This document shows positions 14,066-21,093 of a stretch of 64,000 bases of DNA, piece by piece. The notes under the pieces were generated by a model that made no database searches, had not been told where the DNA came from, and saw nothing but the letters and a program-made list of their open reading frames with translations. Position numbers and translations under genes: made by a program. Origin of the DNA: Trichosphaerium sp. ATCC 40318 (lineage: Eukaryota > Protista > Tubulinea); contig JALMLS010000216.1 of NCBI GenBank assembly GCA_038496445.1, positions 62,001 to 126,000 of the forward strand. Reading direction: 5' to 3'. Every line of letters begins with the position of its first letter. Positions within the stretch are counted from its first letter, which is position 1.

Positions 14066-14509
14066 TTACCAGATTGGATTCAATACTTCCAATACATCGT
14101 ATTCCCAAGTTAAACGAATATAAGCCTTTTTAAGTCCTTTGGGTGTTATGAGAGTTCGAACTCTTTCTACTTTTACATAATACTTTTGTTCAAAAGCATT
14201 TTTTATCTGGTGTTTGTTCGCTCTTCTGTCTACTATAAATGTTGCTGTGTTTAAGTGTTCTACTTTGTTTAAGGCATGTTCAGTTGTCACAGGGTATCTC
14301 AACACATCTGCTATATGTAGCGTTGTTTTCTTAGGAATGGCTTTCTTTGGGTAAATTGGTTTGCGTTGGTGTCTTTGAGTTTTCTTGCGCTTGAACGACG
14401 GCTTTGAGAATCGGTTGAGTTGTTTTTTACAGTTTAAATTTTTCGTTTGTTGTTTCTTTGTATGTAGTGCTTTAGCAGCTGCTTCTTCCCTAGTTTGTTG
14501 TTCTGCCAT
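14066..14509 (-). CDS. RPL23A: 60S ribosomal protein L23a (uL23), divergent copy
   Basis: RYPVTTEHA, NTATFIVDRRANKHQIKNAF and VRTLITPKGLKKAYIRL, with a basic N-terminal extension. A 5'UTR intron acceptor (CTAAC...TGTAG) lies just upstream of the ATG. Confidence 0.93.
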   Translation of the reverse strand: MAEQQTREEAAAKALHTKKQQTKNLNCKKQLNRFSKPSFKRKKTQRHQRKPIYPKKAIPKKTTLHIADVLRYPVTTEHALNKVEHLNTATFIVDRRANKHQIKNAFEQKYYVKVERVRTLITPKGLKKAYIRLTWEYDVLEVLNPIW

Positions 14510-15148: not shown

Positions 15149-17788
15149 TTAGTACTTTATTTTAAGCTTCTTTCTGATGCCTTGCCTATGAGTGTTCTGC
15201 TTACGCTTCTGTCCTGCACGGACATCATGAAAGTTGGCATACGATTTTGGCTACAAGTACACAGAGTGAGTTTTTTTGAAATCTTTGATTCAAAAAAGAA
15301 AAAAAAAGCAAGCGGATACGTACCTTATCTTTCTCTTCTCTACGCTTGATGAGCTCTTTCTCAATAGCCTTGATAAGAGTCCTTTGATTTTCAGGTTTAA
15401 CATACTCTTCTGTACTACTTGTAAAGTACGAAGCACCATCAGTTTGGACATCAACAACATATCCATGATCTTCTAAGAAACCTCTACGCTTCGCAGCATA
15501 ATTTACTTCCTCAGTCTCTGTTGAAACAAGGGAATAGAAGTGTGCTTCTTCTTTTCCTTCAAAAGGTCTTTGAATACGTCCTATACGTTGTCCTTCTTGC
15601 ATACGAGACCCGTCTGTCAAACCAAGTTGAATCACAACGTCAGCACTAGGTAAATCGATAGACTGATCTCCGACTTTACTAAGAAGGATGCGGTTTATGC
15701 TATCCACTCCGCTTGACCTTCTGAACCTGGACAAGATACGTGCACGCTCTTCCGTGGCTGTATTACCGTCTACCATGTCCCATTCTAAAACAGAAGTAAG
15801 AGGCAAATGATAGAAAAGCTTGGCGTACTAAGGAGATGAGAATACCAATGTAAACTGAAGATTGAGTCGCAAAATATGATAACTTTGCTACCAGCCTTTG
15901 CATGCTTTGTTACTAGCTCATACATAACGCGTGTTTTGTTAGGATTGCACATGTACAACAACCGACGTTCTTCCATAAAGTCAGAGCTATAACGAATCAG
16001 ATAAGCTAAAGTCCAACTTACATAAAAAAGGAAAAAAGTACATTTGATGTCTTTCTTTGAACTTAATTGCCATTGGAACACGGATCTCATGACAGCGAAC
16101 AGGAGCAATGTGTCCACGCATCCTAAAGATATTCGTTACAAGAACCGTACTTAAAAAGAAATTAAGGTAATCGTACTGTAGAGTGAAGATATCGAGCTCA
16201 TACAATGTTGGACCAACGAGATAAGGTAGTTCAGGGATTAGATTATCCTCACGAACCATCGTTGCAGTTAATCCGAGCTTAACATGACATTTTATTTGAT
16301 TTGTTACTTTCCTAGGGATTGTTAAAAGACTGTAAAATTAAATAAAAGAAAAAAGCGGTACCTGAAAATCTTTGCTGGTGCAAGATGCACTTCATCTAGT
16401 ACCATGATACCCCAGACACGTTCTTTACATTGTCTCATAGTCTGTAGAGAATCCTCTTTCCTGCCAGTTTGCGTGGAGAACATACTGTACGTTGTAACGA
16501 CGATGTTGGCACTAGATATGTCAGTTTAATGATCTTGATATTGACTTTGATAGCGTACTTGGCATCCCACTCTGCACGATGAAGCGAAGCAAATCGAGAT
16601 ATCTGCTTATCACGAACAGCAGCAAACTTTTTGAATTGCTCTTTCCACTGCGTCACTGCAAGAGCAGATTGACAAAACACAATAGCATTCAACTACAAGT
16701 AATGTTAGTTAGATGATTTTTACACTAAAAAGAAAAAGAAAAAAAAAAAAGAAAAACTATTCGTACCTTGCACAACGCAACGGCGTTTATACCGATTAAG
16801 GTCTTTCCAGCACCACAAGGTAGAACCAAGACACCAGAGTGCATCTTATAACCGTTCCAGAATAAACTGTGACTACTGTGGAGTTGGTAATCCCTCAACT
16901 TTATCTCAGGCCGGATGTTTATGCTACACAATAATAAATTAGTGTTGTGTATTGTAGCAGTTCCTTGTACTTTATCTTTGATGCTTCTGTATGGCTACCA
17001 AGTTCATATTCTTCTATTATAGGATACCCATTATGATAGCATATACGTTTGACGGATTCTGCTTGCTCAGGAGAGATTTCAAATCCGAAATATTCTCTTG
17101 AATCTAAATTGCTTTAGTTTTTGTTTTTTCAAAATCCAAAACGTACCGTCTCCGTAGTACTTGTTAACAACCCTATTAGGACAGTATCTATCCAAAGCAG
17201 GGATTGACTTTATTTTAACAATCAAGTCTTGATCTGGTGCTTGAACAAAGTACTTTGTGTCCCTATTGAGTAATAAAATGTTAAGAAAAACATTTTCATT
17301 TACTGACGTACCTCAACACTAATAGTAGCTCGTAGTATGTGTTTGTCGTGTATTTTCGTATGAGCCTGTGTAGTTTAACGGGCATTATCTCGTTTGATAG
17401 ATATCCTACTAGTCTGACAATCTCCTTGGCATTGTAACCTGAAAAAAGAAAAAGAATAAGCAAACGAATAACAAATTACAGGCACGTGAAGGAAAAAAAA
17501 AGAAGGATGTAGGTTGAGAATAAAAACACCGATATCTTGACACATACCTCTTGAATACGCCAAGAAAAGAGATAACGGTGTTATCTCATACAAGTAGTAT
17601 TTTGCATCTACGATCTTCTTAAATTCAGCAACACTGTCAAGCAACTCTTTTGCTAAAGCAATGCCACGTTCTCGTTGTAGAATAGGTAACTGTTTGACTA
17701 CAGGTAACAAAATTTCTACCATCTTATCTTCTGCTTCTCCATATACTAGAGGATGGCAATTAAAGTCTTCCATGATTTCTTCTTCAAG
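15149..17788 (-). CDS. ERCC3: XPB/ERCC3/Ssl2-family SF2 DNA translocase module
   Basis: XPB N-terminal domain (YEITPLSLFLAYSRG...LVLRDTKYFVQ), LRDYQ, Walker A LPCGAGKT, QWKEQF, Walker B LDEVH, LGLTATMVRED, LYMCNPNK, SKVGDQSIDLP and QRIGRIQR. Confidence 0.95.
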
Positions 17789-19878
17789 CTTTATTGAAAA
17801 AAACCAGATAAGCAAAACAGAAAACTATGCAAACTCTGTAGGTACCTCCATTTTGGCGCTTCCAGCTTTATTTGCAGAACCAACAGCCTTAGAGTTTCTA
17901 GCTTCAGGCTTACCACGTCTTCGTGATCGTGACTTAGTTGCTTGACGCCTAGGTGCTACAGTCTTGCGAACAGTTCGTTTATATTGTTTACCTATCGCTC
18001 TCATTACATTCTTTAAAAATATTGTAGTTGTGATACGTACCTCCTTTATCGAGGTTAGCCAAGTCGTCTAATCTATCTTTTAGAGGTTGTATGATGTTTT
18101 TTAGCTCTTTCAGAGATAGTTCTAGTAATTGAAGCTTCTCTCGATTATTAGTTCTTATCAGCTCACTGTCACAGCCCATTATATCACAATGGTACTTTCC
18201 AGTTGCTCTATTCTTAACACGCTCGAGTTGCAAGGTCCTGAAATGCTTCTTGCATGGAGTGCAGTAGAGTACTTGATCTCTAACCTGCTCTATTTCCTCT
18301 TCAAGGTTTTTTTCCATAGATAGGACACGGTAATTTACAGCGTCAACAAACTTGTCCAAGTCAATTGACCAAACATTAAACATTCTTCCATAGCCTTTTT
18401 TGGCTGTTGTCTTTTTAGGCTCGACAGCCGTTCTACATTTTCCTGTCAGCTCAAATACAATGATATTCTGTCGTTACGTACCTAGTAATCAACTTGTGGC
18501 CATTTAGGATATTCAAAGCCTTACTAACTTGTTTTGCTGGTAGTTGTAATTCGGCATATAAATCTTTTTCTCGAAATCTAATAACAAAAGCATGTTAGAG
18601 CAAATACCAATAACATTCAAACACGTGAAATAAAATTAAAGTAGAACACGTACAATTTCTTTTCAACGAACTTGTAAAGGGTAAGAATATAGCTATCTTC
18701 GCTATAGAACCACGTAGCAACAATAGCGAGGAGATCAACAACTTTTTCAAATTCAGTAGGATTTGCATCTCCATTGTGTAACACAATGTGCTTTTGTTTT
18801 TTGGCAGAGTCTTCTTCTGTAGATGGCAAGAAATCGAAGTTTGTATCAAGCTTTAACACGTGTTCTTCGCCACCTTGGCTTTGATGTTGCATACTGAATA
18901 GGATCAGTTTCAAAGTAAATTTTTTGTATGTTTAAAATCTTACCGGAGGTGAGCCGCGAGGGCTTGCAAGTCAGCATCAGCAGCAGAGGTCTTACGCTTG
19001 GTACTTCTTCGCCGCTTTGGAGCGTCTTGATATAACTCTGGTTGTACGTTGCAGTCGAGTTTCGATAGTTGGCGATTGTTATCTCTACACGCAATTAAAA
19101 ACCACCAAAAAAATAATGATTGATAAACTCGTACGCTAAGAATTGTCTCAGGTCAACGAAATCAACCTTGGCGACATTGTTCCATAATCTCTGTAGTGTC
19201 CTTGCTATCGGTACTAGAGTAATAGGTGGATTCACGTGATTTAACGACGGCCTCAAATACAAAAACTACACAACAACATTTTAGTAAGAATACGGCGGTG
19301 TACGGCTTGTACCAAGTTTTTGCTGACGCTGTGTTTGACTGTAAGTATTTTAAGGTCTTCGTGAAGCTCCTATAGCAATCTAATCAGTTCTCACTCGTCA
19401 CACGTTCGAAACGTCAAAAAAAAAAGCTTGGCCAACTGCGCAAAAAAAACCGGCAAGATAAAAATTGACTTCATTCGGTAGAAGCAAAAATATGGGTTAG
19501 AAGGCTTTGCTGAAAATTACTCATGTTCAAATTACTCATAGATTACTTCCGTACAGCTATAAAGTCGTCAATTCCATCGTACGCAGTGGTCGTTTCTTCA
19601 TCTACCTCCATTATCCTGTCTTTTTTCAAAATTTGCAGTATATCATCAGCGCTATCGATACGATACTTGTGTTTGTATTGAATATGCCCAGTATTGGGAT
19701 CATACTCCAACTGGCTGTTTGCTTTTAACAGTTCAAGGAGCGGTACGGTTATTATAATTCCGAGGCTCTGTTGAATTTCTGCCATTGTTAACCCGGCAGG
19801 GTTCTTTTTTAACGCTAGAACAACCTCAAAATGTTGCGTGCCCAGGTGGGGTTGTCCAGACCCTTCTGGAGCGGACAT
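15149..19878 (-). CDS. Predicted TFIIE-beta / TFIIE-alpha / XPB (ERCC3, Ssl2) triple fusion protein
   Basis: Every inter-domain junction is a canonical, phase-compatible intron: 19554-19370, 19312-19266, 19134-19085, 18943-18894, 18040-17992 and 17845-17789. There are no in-frame stops across these junctions after splicing. Confidence 0.75.
18041..18893 (-). CDS. GTF2E1: TFIIE alpha subunit module (Tfa1/GTF2E1-like): extended winged helix + Zn ribbon
   Basis: LLAIVATWFY...FREKDLYAELQLPAKQVSKALNILNGHKLI...WSIDLDKFVDAVNYRV...YCTPCKKHF...YHCDIMGCDSEL...IQPLKDRL. Confidence 0.87.
18940..19878 (-). CDS. GTF2E2: TFIIE beta subunit module (Tfa2/GTF2E2-like)
   Basis: Winged helices LLELLKANSQLEYDPNTGHIQYKHKYRIDSADDILQILKK, then spliced LQRLWNNVAKVDFVDLRQFL and a basic KRRRSTKRK tail. 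Confidence 0.85.
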
Positions 19879-20410: not shown

Positions 20411-20970
20411 TTATTTCTTTTTTGTCCATTTTCTGAAGGCGTTGTTGATGTTTATAATATCAGAGGCACTAATACTTGCTTCTTTGCCTAGTTTTTCACT
20501 TTCAAACGTCATTAGCTGTTTTAAAAACCCTCTATTGGGCTGAATACCCTTTCGCTTTGTTTTTACAGTTATGATAGCGTCTCTCAGCGACATGTCACTG
20601 CCGTGCATCAAATACGCAATTACCACCGCTGGAGACCTACTAACACCACCTGAAGGCGTCAGTATGATTTAAAGAGTTATTTATCGCTACCTGAGCAATG
20701 TACAAGCACTTTGTGCTTGCCTCTCTTCAGTTTGTCTAAAAAAGTAAAAATATCTTGTAGCAAGCTTAAAATATCCGCTTCTGCGTTGTCTGTTATATGA
20801 CATTGCTTGTACGTGAATTTACTAGGATATAAGCATTTGCCAGCCAAGTTTACAATGTGAGTAATTCCAAGTTGTTCTAACCCCTCTGACGCCTTTGCTG
20901 CGCGAACACTCCCAAGAAAAAGGAAGTTATCTATAATTTGAGTACAGTCTATGTTTTTACGCCGAGCCAT
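20411..20970 (-). CDS. Atypical dual-specificity protein phosphatase
   Basis: TQIIDNFLFLGS, GITHIVN, spliced VHCSGGVSRS, AYLM and IQPNRGFLKQL. Confidence 0.92.
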
Positions 20971-21093
20971 GTAGTGTACAGTAGTACGAGAGTACTTTAT
21001 AACGTCAGCTTTTGCTGTAATCGTCAATACAATTCAGTTCAGATAACAGTATCACGAAGAAAACAGTTTTTTTTTATTAAGTTTTCTTTCACA

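Follow-up and report, generated by a model that had tools for sequence, protein, structure and literature searches.

A probable TFIIE-beta/TFIIE-alpha/XPB fusion gene in Trichosphaerium and its relatives in lobose amoebae

A 64,000-nucleotide (nt) stretch of the genome of Trichosphaerium sp. ATCC 40318 (GenBank assembly GCA_038496445.1, contig JALMLS010000216.1, positions 62,001–126,000; hereafter the window, in which all positions below are numbered) carries a minus-strand locus, from 19878 to 15149, that is very probably one real gene of 20 exons encoding TFIIE-beta, TFIIE-alpha and the XPB translocase in a single chain. Textbooks treat TFIIE and the TFIIH subunit XPB as separate factors, which are recruited in order under the standard model of transcription initiation by RNA polymerase II (Pol II). 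Judged from sequence comparison, it is highly likely that the product of this one gene consists of TFIIE-beta, an acidic linker, a TFIIE-alpha core and a complete XPB/Ssl2 translocase, which is attached through a flexible, basic tether of ~65 residues.

The individual factors and the way they work together were known before; what was not known is that they can be joined covalently in one chain and that this arrangement is conserved. Full-text literature searches for TFIIE–XPB (ERCC3) fusions in protists, including Amoebozoa and Tubulinea, turned up no paper describing such a protein, and a 2026 review of XPB makes no mention of one. An earlier reading of the window, made from sequence only, had likewise known of no described equivalent. 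That statement agrees with the literature searches, but the architecture is already present, unrecognized, in public databases, where the entries that contain it are named "uncharacterized protein," "ERCC-3," "DNA 3'-5' helicase" or "TFIIE alpha subunit" and none is named as a fusion. The fusion explains why these proteins have been misnamed as ERCC-3 or as TFIIE alpha subunit or left as uncharacterized.

Gene structure and relatives of the fused protein

Splice sites were mapped by hand, which added 16 introns to the three introns at the module junctions. The resulting spliced frame begins at ATG 19878, ends at the TAA at 15151–15149 and contains 3522 nt, or 1173 codons plus the stop, in 20 exons separated by 19 introns. 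The TFIIE-beta module (residues 1–217; 18944–19878) is encoded by exons 19878–19555, 19369–19313, 19265–19135 and 19084–18944. Junction intron 1 (18894–18943; 50 nt, phase 2, GTAAGA...ACTGAT...TTCAG) leads from beta to the acidic beta-alpha linker and the TFIIE-alpha module (residues 218–460; 18041–18893), which occupy exons 18893–18654, 18577–18482 and 18432–18041. Junction intron 2 (17992–18040; 49 nt, phase 1, GTACGT...TAG) lies between alpha and a basic, low-complexity linker exon (residues 461–509, GKQYKRTVRK...SAKME; 17846–17991), and junction intron 3 (17789–17845; 57 nt, phase 0, GTACCT...AATAAAG) joins the linker to the XPB/Ssl2 module (residues 510–1173; 15149–17788), with its N-terminal domain, two RecA lobes and C-terminal extension. 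The XPB module is spread over 12 exons, 17788–17548, 17438–17312, 17262–17147, 17103–16971, 16923–16767, 16692–16559, 16511–16362, 16311–16177, 16122–16042, 15986–15829, 15784–15324 and 15250–15149, and the last intron of the gene is 15323–15251.

The sequence-only reading had placed these three modules in the same order on the minus strand, linked across three junction introns by phase-compatible joints. Pfam matches of single exons bear out the order, the boundaries and signals of all three introns are exactly as it described, and the joined 1173-codon frame contains no internal stop.

The introns of this gene have an unusual donor consensus: 14 of the 19 begin with GTAC, most of these with GTACG, and not with GTAAG or GTATG. 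Most of the introns are 43–57 nt in length, and in about half of them a YTRAY branch site stands 9–18 nt from the acceptor.

The C-terminal XPB exon (window 15321–15827, minus strand) was used as the query against 1.84 billion representative proteins. Its best matches were proteins of 996–1341 residues with XPB at the C-terminal end, which differ from ordinary XPBs of 700–850 residues. In five of the eight long matches that were scanned first, Pfam recognized TFIIE_alpha ahead of the XPB domains; some relatives also had TFA2_Winged_2 or TFIIE_beta still further upstream. The 1213-residue protein of Vermamoeba vermiformis contains TFIIE_beta (12–63), TFA2_Winged_2 (69–124), TFIIE_alpha (264–366), Helicase_C_3, ResIII and ERCC3_RAD25_C in order. 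The same module order is present in full-length open reading frames (ORFs) of Trinity-assembled mRNAs from Vermamoeba (1213 residues), Amoeba proteus (1178) and Nolandella sp. (1169). Arcella intermedia has two distinct fused genes (P0285/P0178 and P0289/P0174), with mRNA ORFs of 1102 and 1145 residues, and therefore the family duplicates as a whole unit. The Rhizamoeba saxonica member has 996 residues and is short at its 5' end, and Difflugia compressa contributes a 624-residue piece.

Genomic sequence gives the same picture. A Vermamoeba-like NCBI assembly (L001) has an uninterrupted genomic frame of 1131 codons that covers the second beta winged helix, alpha and XPB up to its end, with the exon for the first winged helix (WH1) alone set apart, by a single intron; two further genomic contigs (L003 and L004) have uninterrupted ORFs of 1170 and 1062 residues that contain the beta C terminus, alpha and XPB. 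Because uninterrupted genomic ORFs carry the fusion, it is independent of anyone's splice prediction.

Examples of this architecture in public databases are the EukProt entries EP00029_Vermamoeba_vermiformis_P003137, EP01126_Amoeba_proteus_P042283 and EP01128_Nolandella_sp_AFSM9_P006453. The RefSeq protein XP_049848955.1 (P0008; "uncharacterized protein LOC126316966," 1227 residues) also belongs to the family, although it is filed under Schistocerca gregaria; the contig it comes from (342,834 nt, GCA_023897955.2) probably belongs to an amoeba or another locust-associated protist rather than to the insect itself. These database members agree with the window protein in module order and motifs and are of similar length; they share 36–49% identity with it, and their introns are few or absent (one in Vermamoeba) compared with 19 here. 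Searches with the TFIIE half of the Vermamoeba protein P0151 and with alignment A1 gave only Vermamoeba-like proteins among the matches listed.

The homology is collinear from end to end. Our gene model and Vermamoeba P0151 align in one BLAST high-scoring segment pair, residues 8–1172 against 2–1213, with 39% identity, and similar spans were obtained with P0282, P0288, P0289 and P0175; the Arcella, Amoeba and Nolandella proteins and several environmental ones align in a similar way. None of the 19 exon joints introduces a gap in an alignment with 12 relatives. At the joint between beta and alpha, ...LQALAAHLR and M are followed by HVLK and KKQKHIVLHNGDANPTEF, for which the Vermamoeba counterparts are SHVLK and KKKKQYMYHNIEANPEQF; at the joint between linker and XPB, SAKME followed by LEEEIMEDFNCHP aligns with LAKMEEEVLEPYNARP of P0005/P0152. 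The linkers themselves are poorly conserved across the 26 members: the beta-alpha linker ranges from 27 to 91 residues and is usually strongly acidic, and the alpha-XPB tether ranges from 47 to 265 residues. In many members, an acidic and hydrophobic segment directly precedes the N-terminal domain of XPB.

These data indicate that the fused proteins are a conserved, so far unnamed family of lobose amoebae (Tubulinea) and related environmental lineages, with the same architecture in single assembled mRNAs of at least four amoebae and in three other genomes. The single mRNAs of the relatives, their uninterrupted genomic ORFs and the end-to-end collinearity support the earlier proposal that the window locus is one gene for one polypeptide.

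Domain content and conserved motifs

Single exons of the window were compared with Pfam hidden Markov models, and all three modules gave matches, although of unequal strength. Exon 1 matched TFIIE_beta (PF02186, WH1) with E = 2.2e-09 and 37.9 bits, where the cut-off is 28.1. The region of the second beta winged helix is split over three window exons and aligns without gaps to relatives with PF18121 matches; among these, P0288 passes the cut-off at 28.4 bits and the others fall below it. Two window exons matched TFIIE_alpha (PF02002) weakly (0.04 and 0.008). The XPB exons matched ResIII (3.8e-05) and ERCC3_RAD25_C (4.4e-38).

A profile was also built from the N-terminal halves of 12 family members. 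It matched yeast Tfa2 residues 140–319 (1.7e-14), human TFIIE-alpha residues 16–199 (E = 2e-27) and yeast Tfa1 (1e-22); against archaeal TFE the same profile reached only E = 0.27, and it gave no match to Pol III subunits. The TFIIE-alpha part comprises an extended winged helix, a C4 (C2C2) zinc ribbon and one helix after the ribbon, and the four zinc-ribbon cysteines are kept in the window protein and in 26 of 26 family members. In the gene model, beta is not a separate polypeptide but is joined to alpha by a 38-residue acidic linker, and the two are continuous in the relatives too. The folded acidic C-terminal domain of TFIIE-alpha is absent from the window protein. Both linkers do contain short stretches that are acidic and hydrophobic, such as LDTNFDFLPSTEED in the one from beta to alpha and MELEEEIMEDF ahead of XPB.

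A clade-specific motif, KKxxYxYHNxxANPEEF, stands just before the alpha winged helix and is kept in most members; the window version is KKQKHIVLHNGDANPTEF. An acidic stretch precedes it, and the two lie in model residues 218–255 (window about 18893–18780).

The helicase motifs of the XPB part are intact. GAGKT (Walker A), DEVH, RED and QEGQRIGR (motif VI) are all present in the window, as the sequence-only reading had claimed when it described an XPB that keeps these motifs and its N-terminal domain. Across the family, all 26 members have DEVH, RED and motif VI, and Walker A reads GAGKT in 25 and GGGKT in the remaining one. Relatives carry PF13625. The XPB part of the Rhizamoeba protein P0003 matched yeast Ssl2 at 4e-114 and human XPB at 1e-106, and the window XPB is 49% identical to it over 629 residues. 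A protein atlas search returned generic XPB clusters only.

A tree built from the helicase region groups the fused proteins, together with four shorter rows, in a single clade that has 100% support and a long stem (1.14 changes per site). Two of the shorter rows are shown to be partial ORFs of fused genes, and the other two are probably so. The clade stands apart from all canonical XPBs in the sample, including those of Monocercomonoides, Blastocystis and Guillardia, a sample that held no canonical amoebozoan XPB; the tree does not fix the point of attachment among them.

Copy number, shorter products and the module junctions

The fused gene may be the only TFIIE and the only XPB of Tubulinea, in which case TFIIE would be a permanent, covalent subunit of TFIIH; we put the chances of this at about even. 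A one-to-one-to-one fusion of partners in one complex is most simply explained as a fusion of their only copies, and no canonical XPB or stand-alone TFIIE of these amoebae turned up, although no search was aimed at them. If this is correct, then promoter opening and, necessarily, nucleotide excision repair would be performed by a TFIIH that always carries TFIIE, and the fusion would be a shared derived character marking a large amoebozoan clade.

It is also quite possible, though short of probable, that the fused gene is an extra, specialized paralogue, as the sequence-only reading had suggested, existing beside separate genes for TFIIE-alpha, TFIIE-beta and XPB and serving only some promoters or working apart from core TFIIH. 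The fully supported clade on its long stem, apart from the sampled canonical XPBs, would fit such a history, as would the low identity of the window protein to canonical XPBs (33–40%, compared with 42–49% to fused-clade XPBs) and the two fused copies in Arcella, which demonstrate that the family duplicates. Kinetoplastids provide a precedent for specialized XPB paralogues. However, XPB identity within the fused clade is 45–59% between orders of Tubulinea, a divergence that is not obviously faster than that of canonical XPB.

Regulated retention of the junction introns could, in principle, make the locus a splice-controlled switch that yields the full fusion and also shorter products (beta alone, beta-alpha, or alpha-XPB and XPB started at internal ATGs). 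We consider this unlikely. Each retained junction intron would end the protein at a module boundary, and Trinity assemblies contain shorter ORFs in Amoeba proteus (975 and 536 residues), Nolandella (562) and Arcella (~590). However, retention introduces a stop for 16 of the 19 introns of the gene, the methionine that opens the alpha exon is not conserved (relatives have leucine or another residue), and unspliced or partial assemblies routinely give such isoforms. The shorter isoforms (P0176 and P0281 from Amoeba proteus, P0009 from Nolandella, P0284 and P0287 from Arcella) are of three types: alpha-XPB with a different first 59 residues, XPB only from an internal methionine, and N-terminal half only. 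They look like partly spliced or partial assemblies; real shorter products are possible.

Several features of the locus do count against the single-chain gene proposed here. The beta frame read on after ...AAHLR passes from CGG directly into TAA, a stop that forms part of the GTAAGA donor of junction intron 1, and the alpha exon has an ATG one base after the acceptor of that intron. Junction intron 3 has an unusual AAG end and contains AATAAA. These features make separate or truncated products possible. The PF02002 matches on the window's own exons sit below the Pfam cut-off, so the identification of TFIIE-alpha rests on alignment with the relatives, and none of the nine sequencing runs listed for the organism is on record as RNA.

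Read literally, the same signals outline three separate, closely packed genes or cistrons, with the 50–57 nt "introns" as spacers: beta would stop at the TAA at 18942–18940, alpha would run from ATG 18892 to the TAG at 17827–17825, and XPB would start from ATG 17773. The linker-exon frame read on ends ...MEVPTEFA and then TAG, in frame within junction intron 3, and ATG 17773 lies five codons after the acceptor of that intron. This layout is very improbable: the relatives are continuous at the equivalent positions and read through both junctions, in genomic ORFs and in single mRNAs, and the operon or three-cistron reading is refuted on that ground.

The details of the junctions also speak for one gene. 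The 15 nt upstream of ATG 17773 (encoding LEEEI) are homologous to the relatives, aligning with EE-EV and EED-EI, yet these codons would be untranslated under a three-gene model. A stop followed by an ATG is weak evidence for separate genes here because, as noted, most introns of the gene give a stop on retention and another internal exon also begins with methionine. The three junction introns were scored with position weight matrices trained on the other 16 introns, with 874 GT-AG pairs in the locus as background, and ranked at the 97.6th to 99.9th percentile of that background. Their donor scores of 4.7–12.0 (other introns, 4.3–12.1; junction intron 2 has the best of the three) and acceptor scores of 1.4–4.9 (others, -0.5 to 9.3) are within the range for the gene, as are their lengths of 49–57 nt against a modal ~47–55 nt, and junction intron 1 carries a CTGAT branch site. 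A test for a polycistronic cluster gave the same result: the spacers behave as ordinary introns, although stops and ATGs exist at the junctions.

True intergenic spacing in this part of the window is larger. The downstream neighbor is a single-exon gene for ribosomal protein L23a (RPL23a; 14066–14509, minus strand; PF00276, 1.7e-14) at a distance of ~640 nt, and the upstream neighbor is a two-exon dual-specificity phosphatase gene (20411–21027, minus strand; PF00782) at ~530 nt, compared with 49–57 nt at the module junctions.

Junction intron 2 contains an ATG, at 18004, from which an ORF of 59 codons (MRAIGKQYKR..., 17825–18004, minus strand) runs in the frame of the linker exon. An XPB start at this ATG, with a basic N-terminal extension, was considered and rejected, as the relatives show alpha running into the linker.

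Proposed mechanism and comparison with known systems

A role for the fused protein in Pol II initiation is suggested by its domain content. We propose that the TFIIE half would, like ordinary TFIIE, bind Pol II at the clamp and the bubble at its upstream edge, and that the tethered XPB half, on downstream DNA, would pump DNA into the cleft and thereby open the promoter. The order of fusion fits the geometry of the pre-initiation complex, with the beta C terminus leading to the alpha N terminus and the post-ribbon helix of alpha leading to the XPB N terminus. The covalent tether may replace or reinforce the non-covalent recruitment of TFIIH by the TFIIE-alpha tail: a flexible tether stands in place of the folded acidic domain, and we therefore propose that XPB is delivered together with TFIIE and that recruitment is intramolecular. 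Through the short acidic and hydrophobic stretches of its linkers, the chain could still bind p62, which would place the XPB half within a TFIIH core, but this is a guess.

The long-conserved fusion implies that the three chains can work at a fixed 1:1:1 stoichiometry with beta-alpha-XPB topology and that a tether as short as ~47 residues is enough. If the protein functions as proposed, then stepwise recruitment of TFIIE and then TFIIH would be dispensable in at least one eukaryotic lineage, and if separate copies are absent, the question arises of how excision repair tolerates a TFIIE-bearing TFIIH. The protein is a putative ready-made, single-chain promoter-opening module for biochemistry and electron cryomicroscopy, and the fusion might serve as a phylogenetic marker of lobose amoebae.

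Solved structures of pre-initiation complexes place TFIIE on the clamp of Pol II, above the upstream bubble edge, with its alpha subunit extending to TFIIH. The modules of the amoebal protein are like their canonical counterparts in having, for beta, WH1 and, probably, a second winged helix and a basic C terminus; for alpha, an extended winged helix and C4 zinc ribbon; and for XPB, the N-terminal domain, the RED motif and helicase motifs I–VI. The canonical proteins are three chains, whereas the amoebal fusion is one polypeptide; its beta part is without the long N-terminal region of canonical TFIIE-beta, and its alpha part ends one helix past the zinc ribbon, where the variable tether of 47–265 residues replaces the acidic domain. 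In the canonical system, the TFIIE "E-bridge" helix contacts XPB lobe 2, consistent with ATPase stimulation (PMC13024598), and the acidic tail of TFIIE-alpha (F387 and V390) binds the p62 PH domain, recruiting TFIIH (PMC2275666).

Other polymerases have built-in TFIIE-like subunits, Pol III RPC62/RPC39 and archaeal TFE-alpha/beta, whose winged-helix and zinc-ribbon modules act in initiation by holding the clamp and the open bubble (PMC4495717). They resemble the amoebal protein in these modules, but none is fused to a translocase, and the profile of the fusion matches TFIIE proper. A functional precedent is the TFIIH of Trypanosoma brucei, in which the stably bound subunits TSP1 and TSP2, interpreted as TFIIE, interact with XPB (PMC5829719). 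Its permanent association of TFIIE-like proteins with TFIIH parallels the covalent fusion; in T. brucei, however, the association is non-covalent and the proteins are extremely divergent, whereas the amoebal modules are joined by a peptide bond and are recognizable with ordinary hidden Markov models.

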